Assembly (NCBI GenBank): GCA_965649765.1
Contig: OZ287748.1
Span: forward strand, 83,018,001-83,082,000
Direction of reading: 5' to 3'
DNA: 64,000 nucleotides
Origin: Bispira polyomma
Lineage: Eukaryota
A program made the translations under genes and the position numbers. A model generated the notes under the pieces. It ran no database searches and was not told the origin of the DNA. It saw only the letters and a program-made list of their open reading frames with translations. Below, one piece after another: positions 25,001 to 28,000 of the stretch. The stretch's first letter is position 1. Each line of letters starts with the position of its first letter.

Positions 25001-28000
25001 GTTTTGTGGTTATGAATGCAATTATGTTTAACTTGTGTCAGTAGCACTTATTCCAGCAATTCATAAATGTCGCTCATCTATATAGTCAATTTGCTAATAT
25101 TAAACTTTAGCAAATACATTGTACTGGGCAAAAGTAAAACAATAATATGGTGTCATCAACGGATGATTGATACAGTTTTCTGGGAATGATACTAGATAAT
25201 GGGCACCACCAACAAAGTCTTTTACTCTATTACCGATTTTTGACTGTATAAATCGCGGATTATATGTTTTTTACAAAATAAATTGGCAAGTGCATGTTAT
25301 ACACCCCTGCGGATAATATGTCCATTTTATTTTAGAAAGACAAACATTGAGATTTCCCTCTCACATAATTCATAAGAAAACGTGCAACCAACCTGTTAAA
25401 CAAAACTAATCCTCCCTCAAAACCACTTTTATCCATTTGCTTTACTTCTACTCCAGTTCTAACATAAACAAAAGCCAAGTTATGAGGGGGGGGGGGGGGT
25501 GTCACTCCCAGTGGGACACAAGCCACAATTATGAGAGCTTAAAATGTTGGCAAATAAAGGTGTTGTTCAAATAGCATTTATATACCAGACATGTGTATTA
25601 TTTTTTAAACCTCAGGGATTCAGATTTTTGAAAACAGAAGAGGGATATAGAAAGAGAGCTTTTCTCTATTTATACACACACATAAATACACACAAATATA
25701 ATGAAAACACACCAGCAGCAGACACATCAGAATTAATGGGGAGAGAAAAAAAAAATCTGTGGAAAACTAATAACAGTACATACTATATATTCTGCAACTG
25801 ATTTGTCAAATGTGGCAAAAGTGGGTAGAAATAAGTCAATGTTTATTATAGGCCTAGCTGATTTAACACAGTTCTAAAATCCACAACAGGCCAAAATAAA
25901 TATTTTTACAGGTTTTGTTATATTAATTGATATTATTTCCTATGAACTATATCATTTAAATTAAAAGTTGTTCAATCCTAAAGAAATCTAATGTTTAAAA
26001 AAATCTCAGTTTAAGTGTCATTAAATTTCATTTTCCTGAAACCCATCAAAGTCCTTATCCTAGATATCAGTGGTATATAAACAATACCAGTATATCTTCT
26101 CCCAGATCAGTTGTAGGCCTGTAATCCTCATCCTCCTCCACTCACTTGTTATTCTTCTTATTCCTCACTGCAGCAGCCTTACACATATCATTCAGTTTAT
26201 TTTTAGGACTAGGATATGTCAAAATATCTTACTAAAATAATAGTGGTTTAATTCCTTCGTGCAGTGATCCCCCCTCCTCCCCCTGTCAAAAGCCGGTTCT
26301 TTTCAGAGCTGGTAAAAGGTAAACAAGATGTGATGAAGACTGATCTTACACATTTTATACATAGGAAACACATTTTACACATAGGAAACTGAGGGTTATC
26401 TAAGGTAAGGGTTATCTGATACTCTTTAAATCCCAAATGTGACCACAGGGCGGGCTATAAACAGTGAGTGTTATACCCCGAAAATAGGGTATACGATTCT
26501 TACCTTTGGACATTTTAACACAAAAGTTTTCTTTGACTGATCATCTACAATTTGGGCTTTAAGAGCTAGCAGCTTAGCAACCTCTTCATCAATCTGAAAA
26601 TTCAAAGAAAAAGAATTGCTTCATTTTAGACACACTAAATAAAGTTTTAAAAGGTGTCAACAGAGGTGTATTTAAGAACATAATATTCAGGTCCAAACAT
26701 AAGAACTAATATAAAAAATTTAAAAAAAATTGGTTTAAAAAGCCTGCTCAAAAGGTCTGCAGGGATCCATGTAACTTTAAACTTAAAAAAATATTTAAAG
26801 CTTTTCGGTAAAATCTATCAATACTTGCACCAATAGATCTTGTTTATACTTTATCCAAAGCTGCAAAACCAAAGTTTAGTTATCAATAATACCTGTTCAT
26901 TGGTATAGCAGAGGTGGCGATATTTCACAAATTTTGGACGAGATGTGAGGGTCAATTTGTTGAGGCAGAAGTTTTTGGTGTGTTGTGTTGAGAGTATACA
27001 GCATGTTGATATCATTTTCATCAAGGGACGCAGAATCATAACCATGGTGTATCAGCAATATGTAAAAAAAGATGAACTTCTTCAGCAGCACTGCCAATGC
27101 ATATAAAAGTGAAATACCCTTGCAAATAATTCCACCTTAGTTTTACTTAAAGTTCTTATTTTGCTGTCTAGGATTGCCCTTTTTTAAAACAGGTGGTATA
27201 TATAACATACATTTATTATGAATTACTCGATGAAACTAAAAATAAACAAGATCCAAGTGCCTGACATAGTCTCCTAAAATTCCTAAACAATGCCTTTGGA
27301 AAGCAGAAAAATTAGCATATCTTTAACATTTTCAAGTGATTTAAAGCAGAATTAGGATGTAATAATTGCATAAAATACTATTGACTACACCAGTGTGCAT
27401 AAATATAAAAATAAAACTTCAAATAATTTGGGGATAAAGCCCAAGTTATAATTTTGAGGTCAGAGTATCGTAAAGTATAAAGTTTTAGTGTTCTTTAGGT
27501 TTTTGTGGCAGTTTTGACTTAATGTTAATAACGTAACCTGTTGATGACTCCCCAGATCACTAGCGGTGGCAGACCTATTATCGCCTGCCTACCAATTGAC
27601 CCCCGCTTCGTAAATTATTTCAAAGATATGTACACTGCCTGTGGCTGTAATTCGGCAGCCCCCCGTTTTAAATTGGCCATAAAAATTTAGATTATTAAGA
27701 CTTGAGGTAGAAAATATAGAAAAGGTTTCAAAGTAAAACAATTATTGCAGCCGAACAATTATAATACTGATATTAAATCATATACAGTATCGTTAGGCCA
27801 ATAAATTTAATTTTGTTGGAATTATGGCACATTTATTATATGGTGGAAGATTTATGACAAGCGGCCCATTAATAAGCCAGTTCGTAGATCTGATTGCACA
27901 GCCGTAGTTACAATCTTCCGGTCTTATATACGGCACATAAAAAACAAGAAGCACCTGTGAACGGCAAAGTGCAGCCAACAACCAATTTAACATGAGGACC

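Follow-up and report, generated by a model that had tools for sequence, protein, structure and literature searches.

A candidate mitochondrial presequence exon in intron 1 of the only histidyl-tRNA synthetase gene found in Bispira polyomma

The histidyl-tRNA synthetase (HARS) gene of the worm Bispira polyomma probably holds, within its first intron, an alternative 5' coding exon that would give the worm's only HARS a mitochondrial presequence. The coding part of the proposed exon (26893..27045, 51 codons, single copy) lies on the minus strand of a 64,000-nucleotide stretch of genomic DNA, here called the window, to which all positions refer. On comparative and compositional evidence, this reading of the segment is probably right.

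HARS occupies the minus strand of the window. The coding part of exon 1 (30009..30113) begins at the cytosolic start, ATG 30113, and its 35 codons encode the first helix of the WHEP domain; the donor, AAG/GTGAAA, has its last exonic base at 30009 and leaves the codon complete at the exon end. Exon 2 (26504..26593) encodes the second WHEP helix along with the beginning of the catalytic core and would be the same in both proposed isoforms. It follows a strong acceptor (ttttcag), and its first codon is complete. Ten further exons, numbered 3-12, were placed between 13953 and 24415 by tblastn with the HARS proteins of other animals, and the HSP limits are approximate: 24415-24296, 23742-23629, 23150-23025, 22709-22593 and 20694-20590 for exons 3-7, and 20162-20073, 19723-19583, 18556-18473, 17910-17644 and 14129-13953 for exons 8-12, all on the minus strand. 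This mapping reaches down to 13953, and the last coding part sits below that position.

Intron 1 falls inside the WHEP domain. Residues 12-34 of exon 1 correspond to positions 1-23 of the Pfam WHEP-TRS profile (E 2.5e-6), and residues 1-15 of exon 2 correspond to positions 25-39 (E 1.1e-3). Each exon alone scores under the 32.5-bit cut-off, as expected of half domains; together they match the profile at the cytosolic N-terminus of HARS. Since the intron divides the domain between profile positions 23 and 25, a swap of exon 1 would remove helix 1, in agreement with the original prediction that a presequence would replace the first WHEP helix.

Perhaps the genome has a separate mitochondrial HARS2 at another place that escaped notice, in which case HARS itself needs no presequence exon? 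Gene duplicates are indeed met with in such animals, Lineus longissimus and Dimorphilus gyrociliatus each being listed with two HARS genes. We therefore looked at the window and at the whole assembly (1.035 Gb, 75 pieces). Within the window, the HSPs of seven HARS proteins were all confined to the minus-strand span 13953-24505 and no HARS-like match lay upstream of exon 1, which agrees with the earlier statement that no HARS2 precedes the gene. Across the assembly, we searched with the peptides of the most conserved exons, 11 and 5, and with a full-length relative (12 matches). The HARS locus of the window was the only one found, with one exception: a stretch on C2 that matched GCN2 (PDB 8t7t_A) with an E value of 2.7e-14 versus 2e-4 for HisRS. 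By its sequence matches this stretch is the HisRS-like domain of GCN2 and no second HARS. A search of the genome with the Pfam family PF13393 came back blank, and even the known HARS locus went undetected. That search is hence insensitive to exon-split genes, which leaves some room for a missed HARS2. The same search was positive in all 14 control genomes, so an intron-poor copy or a bacterial-type hisS would be expected to appear in it, and its blank result argues against an intron-poor second copy. With three whole-assembly searches finding only the HARS locus and the GCN2 domain, we consider a missed HARS2 very improbable. The original prediction of one HARS gene, made with the proviso that a separate HARS2 be sought, thus stands. 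Mitochondrial tRNA-His must still be charged. With only one HARS gene and such a need, the gene should make a mitochondrial form, and the candidate exon would be its source.

The segment had been described as basic, S/T/L-rich and nearly free of acidic residues. Its composition bears this out: the 51-residue peptide has eight K+R, two H, one D+E, nine S+T, four C and seven Leu, and the sole acidic residue is the E at residue 50. An R-H-L-C motif, also part of that description, occupies residues 43-46. The ATG at which the mitochondrial isoform is proposed to start (27043..27045, minus strand) stands in the context TACACCATGG, which includes ACCATGG, an optimal start context. No stop interrupts the frame from ATG 27045 to 26893, where the candidate donor GT (26891..26892; CAG/GTATTA, cut at 26893/26892) leaves a complete codon. 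Donor and exon 2 are both phase 0, as had been claimed, and the candidate exon can hence be joined to exon 2 in frame, which is a matter of sequence compatibility. The DNA of the exon is single copy in the genome and lies inside a single-copy unitig (26450-27897). Its GC content of 0.40, compared with 0.27 and 0.33 in the flanks, forms a local peak, a level also reached by 16.5% of intronic windows.

Upstream of the start codon lies a candidate acceptor AG (27091..27092, minus strand) through which the segment could be used as a cassette. Thirteen of the 20 bases preceding it are pyrimidines, inside the range of 11-17 of 20 that we counted manually at five clear acceptors of the HARS gene. Directly after this AG, the sequence reads TGC TGC TGA in the frame common to exon 1 and ATG 27045, just as the original prediction had it. 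With exon 1 joined to 27090, the TGA (27082..27084) would close an upstream ORF of 37 codons; another TGA in this frame, at 27054-27052, likewise precedes the candidate ATG.

We propose that joining exon 1 directly to exon 2 would yield the cytosolic enzyme, while transcripts with the candidate exon would start translation at ATG 27045. Their first 51 codons would be read as a basic, acid-poor, amphipathic presequence, and a phase-0 splice between 26893 and the first base of exon 2 (26593) would attach it to the rest of the protein. The predicted product is a complete enzyme with a mitochondrial targeting peptide in the place of WHEP helix 1; the enzyme would be imported, and the peptide would probably be cut near R-H-L-C. 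Two routes to such transcripts appear about equally likely. By the cassette route, exon 1 would join 27090, the TGA at 27084-27082 would end the 37-codon upstream ORF, and ribosomes would restart 36 bases later. By the other route, the exon would have its own transcription start, in the unique DNA between 27091 and 27897.

Beyond this unique DNA, intron 1 is rich in repeats. The region 27898..29936 contains dispersed repeats and a TA microsatellite; contigs there are fragmented, with depths hundreds to thousands of times that of single-copy DNA. Two parts of it, 28326-28413 and 28419-28630, each have many matching copies in the genome. The former is a dispersed repeat with many copies that are 91-93% identical, among the 40 scored of 2893 first-look candidates. 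An NRF1/ETS-like motif at 28355-28405, a separate finding of the same first look at the DNA, might have pointed to an internal promoter. The motif sits inside this dispersed high-copy repeat, and we hence rejected it as evidence for a dedicated promoter.

Could the candidate instead be an intron-1 ORF that is open by chance? The same gene would then supply the mitochondrial enzyme in some other way, be it an unrecognised 5' exon elsewhere, a different start codon or the import of the cytosolic enzyme. Length does not speak against chance: the AT-rich intron has five minus-strand ORFs of at least 50 aa, one of which overlaps the candidate in another frame, so the length of the candidate's ORF is unremarkable. 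Nor is the candidate extreme in any single test of composition, each of which a few percent to 18% of null segments pass. Our null consisted of 317 ATG-to-GT segments of 28-57 aa from the whole window. A composition score trained on the presequences of related HARS proteins placed the candidate within the relatives' range, and 27 of the 317 null segments equalled or passed it. By our own crude measures, the hydrophobic moment of the candidate is 0.71 (relatives 0.49-0.89), a value reached by 3.8% of null segments, and its net charge is +7, reached by 6.9%. As low a fraction of D+E was found in 18% of null segments.

A joint filter was far more selective. We took all ATG-to-GT segments of 23-60 aa on both strands of the whole 64-kb window and kept those with at most two acidic residues, a net charge of at least +4 and a final Q. 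Just 2 of 456 segments passed, and the candidate was one of them, a result that speaks against chance, as does the optimal start context. The other (40605-40778, plus strand) had no match in Pfam or PDB. Another phase-0 segment with a donor (GAG/GTAATT), just upstream of exon 1 at 30229-30128, could in principle serve as the unrecognised exon. However, it has three acidic residues, a net charge of zero and no final Q. Between exon 2 and position 33000, the candidate was the best presequence-like phase-0 ATG-to-GT segment.

We also looked for a 3.9-kb stretch in sequencing runs. It matched three runs of one study, whose kind is unlabelled; a run had to contain 1/20 of the words in the 3.9-kb query, and exon-only RNA runs may escape such a search. 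Contigs from the three runs showed even depth across the intron, and in each run one contig spanned 26450-27897 without differences. No exon-exon joint was found in these contigs, the joints listed all lying within repeats (27893-29872). The three runs look like DNA. Together with a search for proteins of 35-112 aa in a collection of 5.8 billion, in which no short protein shared words with the candidate's 64-aa ORF, this result sits more comfortably with a chance ORF.

Is an alternative N-terminus of this kind found in related enzymes? To assemble relatives we used a representative search with exon 11 and then two full-length HARS searches, which added 182 proteins of many different animals. 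Among these, the nearest relatives in our searches were about 73% identical overall to the worm gene. We classed the N-termini of 153 Met-started animal HARS proteins with a recognisable exon-2 boundary. Eighty-five were of the WHEP type, 37 were of a presequence type (acid-poor, 20-60 aa) and 31 were neither; the 20-60 aa range was our selection window, and the first set spanned 23-57 aa. All 153 proteins join at one point, directly before an I-x-E-E-V-A-K-L-L block, which is the exon-2 boundary of the worm. Presequence-type isoforms were present in Patella, Babylonia, Aplysia, Biomphalaria, Dreissena, Lineus, Lamellibrachia, Anneissia, Branchiostoma, Acipenser and Conger, as well as in beetles, moths, a cephalopod and crinoids. 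By our own reading of the tables, Pfam WHEP-TRS was found in none of 20 presequence-type positives (the 21 first-set proteins less P0264), and the final residue before the junction was Q in 18 of the 20. The shared junction, the 37 presequence-type isoforms among 153 and the absence of WHEP-TRS from all 20 indicate that the architecture of the original prediction is the common one in single-HARS animals. The presequence type also includes proteins from turtle and bird, which have an acid-free N-terminus before the shared core and which we take for HARS2-like; a degenerate exon-2 block is kept in the turtle protein only.

Compared with these isoforms, the candidate would have the identical junction, and it has an acid-poor N-terminus, a final Q and a tail with Cys and Ser/Thr-rich residues; in the relatives, too, Cys is followed by Ser/Thr-rich residues shortly ahead of the junction. 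However, at 51 aa the candidate is at the long end of the range, and it is Lys-rich rather than Arg-rich.

The likeness lies in the tail, at the 3' end of the candidate exon. We built a right-anchored matrix from the tails of 27 non-redundant relatives and scored the candidate against null tails. With the last six residues, 1 of 4915 null tails reached the candidate (1 of 191 among null tails ending in Q); with the last eight, 21 of 4309 did (19 of 159), and with the last ten, 9 of 3798 (8 of 144). The candidate tail thus falls in the top 0.02-0.5% of null tails, which speaks against a chance ORF, and much of this signal is the terminal Q. An unsupervised motif learned from the last 14 residues of the relatives gave a similar picture at widths of 5 and 6, where 7 and 12 of 3002 null tails reached the candidate; at width 4, 375 of 3002 did. 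The best local alignment of the candidate was to P0168, the overall closest HARS. None of 454 random open 51-mers reached its score of 32, whereas shuffled versions of the candidate did so in 16 of 300 cases, which amounts to moderate support for homology of the 3' part of the candidate exon.

Other comparisons found no such likeness. In many of the relatives' presequences, an unsupervised motif search picked out C-x-[YF]-H-R, some 12-22 residues ahead of the junction. This motif is absent from the candidate, a further difference from the relatives' isoforms and a point on the side of chance; for this motif, 42 of 315 null segments scored as high as the candidate. Perhaps the true exon lies elsewhere in the neighbourhood? 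Between 26000 and 36000, no frame has the motif together with a start codon, which weakens the case for a chance ORF. When whole presequences were compared with all 2054 open frames of the window by profile HMM and phmmer, nothing was significant, and the candidate was outside the top matches. The claim that the segment is a mitochondrial presequence is partly supported: the likeness of its tail, the single gene and the isoforms of relatives speak for it, the missing C-x-[YF]-H-R and the blank whole-length profile search against it. Weighing these results together with the joint filter and the start context, we judge a chance ORF unlikely and favour the presequence exon.

The mechanism itself is already known from publications on zebrafish hars and on human KARS1, and annotation of the isoform is routine in many animals. 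For exon 2 of human KARS1, the original paper is reportedly that of Tolkunova in 2000. Yeast HTS1 uses alternative transcripts and in-frame starts and is not known to use an alternative exon, as the worm gene would. In the parts of Waldron et al. (2017; PMC5608375) that concern zebrafish hars, inclusion of an exon that lies between exon 1 and the one otherwise following it soon closes the frame begun in exon 1 and provides a new AUG; hars is a single gene there, and both transcripts were cloned and their localisation demonstrated in cells (PMC5608375). The likeness to the worm is close, in that one gene would change its N-terminus only, lose the start of the WHEP domain and send a product to mitochondria, which for the worm is a prediction. 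Unlike in the fish, where transcripts and localisation are described, the worm candidate is known from DNA sequence. The zebrafish exon is about 300 bases long, compared with 198 bases from candidate acceptor to donor in the worm.

As summarised in a review (PMC7600831), inclusion of the middle exon 2 of human KARS1 stops translation from exon 1, and a downstream start adds a targeting peptide; its account extends to zebrafish HisRS as well as KARS1. The worm candidate would have the same pairing of a stop for the exon-1 frame with a new downstream start and a predicted targeting peptide, although KARS1 is a different synthetase and its exon is unrelated. The comparison with KARS1 in the original prediction was correctly drawn as the review describes that gene (PMC7600831), and the same logic had been published for zebrafish hars too (PMC5608375). 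In Drosophila, one HisRS gene is listed as both cytoplasmic and mitochondrial in the section of PMC4826098 that names it, and the longer polypeptide is predicted to be mitochondrial; this is again a single dual-localised gene, but the assignment is prediction-based. HTS1 of yeast is mentioned in PMC5608375 as one gene for both compartments. It resembles the worm gene, which would also serve two compartments.

Different phyla share the junction and some presequence motifs, which is relevant to how vertebrate HARS2 arose. The phase-0 junction recurs in amphioxus, sturgeon, eel, bivalves, gastropods, annelids, nemerteans, crinoids and insects, and in the worm candidate. From this recurrence, the usual terminal Q and the tail with Cys and Ser/Thr-rich residues, one may tentatively suppose that the presequence exon is an ancient bilaterian exon, older than the split of vertebrate HARS and HARS2. 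The first exon of HARS2 would then be its descendant, and the worm may keep a stop-and-restart cassette of the zebrafish type. We offer this as a possibility that we consider less likely than not.

Since the mechanism is published and the isoform is annotated elsewhere, the value of the present finding lies in annotation and not in a new concept. If true, it would fill out the gene model of an essential enzyme, in a genome that lacks annotation, and would explain how mitochondrial tRNA-His is charged in a worm with one HARS gene.

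Outside the HARS locus, a full-length relative compared with the Bispira polyomma assembly detected a single HisRS-like sequence. This was an exon of the HisRS-like domain of the eIF2-alpha kinase GCN2, on assembly piece C2 (G000 C2:48832030-48832212; positions 1495-1677 of L003, the stretch taken from that piece).

At the HARS locus itself, the cytosolic start codon is preceded, at a distance of 10 bases, by the end of a three-codon mini-ORF (ATG AGG TAA; window 30124-30132, minus strand). Dispersed repeats, together with a TA microsatellite (29150-29199), fill two thirds of intron 1 (27898-29936), and contig depth there climbs to as much as thousands of times that of single-copy DNA. 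Within this repeat-rich part, an NRF1/ETS-like motif (28355-28405) lies inside a CpG-rich stretch, 28326-28413. That stretch belongs to a dispersed high-copy repeat, with many copies at 91-93% identity spread over chromosomes (40 scored of 2893 first-look candidates). Hence, the motif comes with the repeat rather than being peculiar to HARS intron 1.

Besides the HARS candidate exon, only one segment in the window passed our presequence-like filter (ATG-to-GT segments of 23-60 residues with at most two acidic residues, net charge of at least +4 and a final Q). This plus-strand segment, 40605-40778, encodes a basic peptide of 58 residues with a final Q before the GT. The AGK motif noted on the first reading of the sequence follows about 1.3 kb downstream of it and, given that position, the segment may be the first exon of the mitochondrial kinase AGK. 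Its translation had no matches in Pfam or PDB.

Among HARS proteins collected from other animals, several molluscs (P0256, P0262, P0282, P0283, P0286 and P0315) carry a third kind of N-terminus, joined at the same point as the other two kinds. It is acidic and has a common G-x-G-D-[IL]-H block; a search of B. polyomma HARS intron 1 for its counterpart found none. The collection also includes transcript-derived proteins in which a complete HARS is fused to a C-terminal GST-like domain (Pfam families GST_N and GST_C). These fusions (P0023, P0157-P0160 and P0212) are 79-82% identical to one another.

The mitochondrial-type HARS presequences of one annelid, several molluscs and one beetle have a different element in common: Cys-x-[Tyr/Phe]-His-Arg, placed about 12-22 residues N-terminal of the exon junction. 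Proteins carrying it include P0173, P0180, P0196, P0197, P0207, P0252, P0263 and P0233, plus others. Such conservation is unusual for a targeting peptide.
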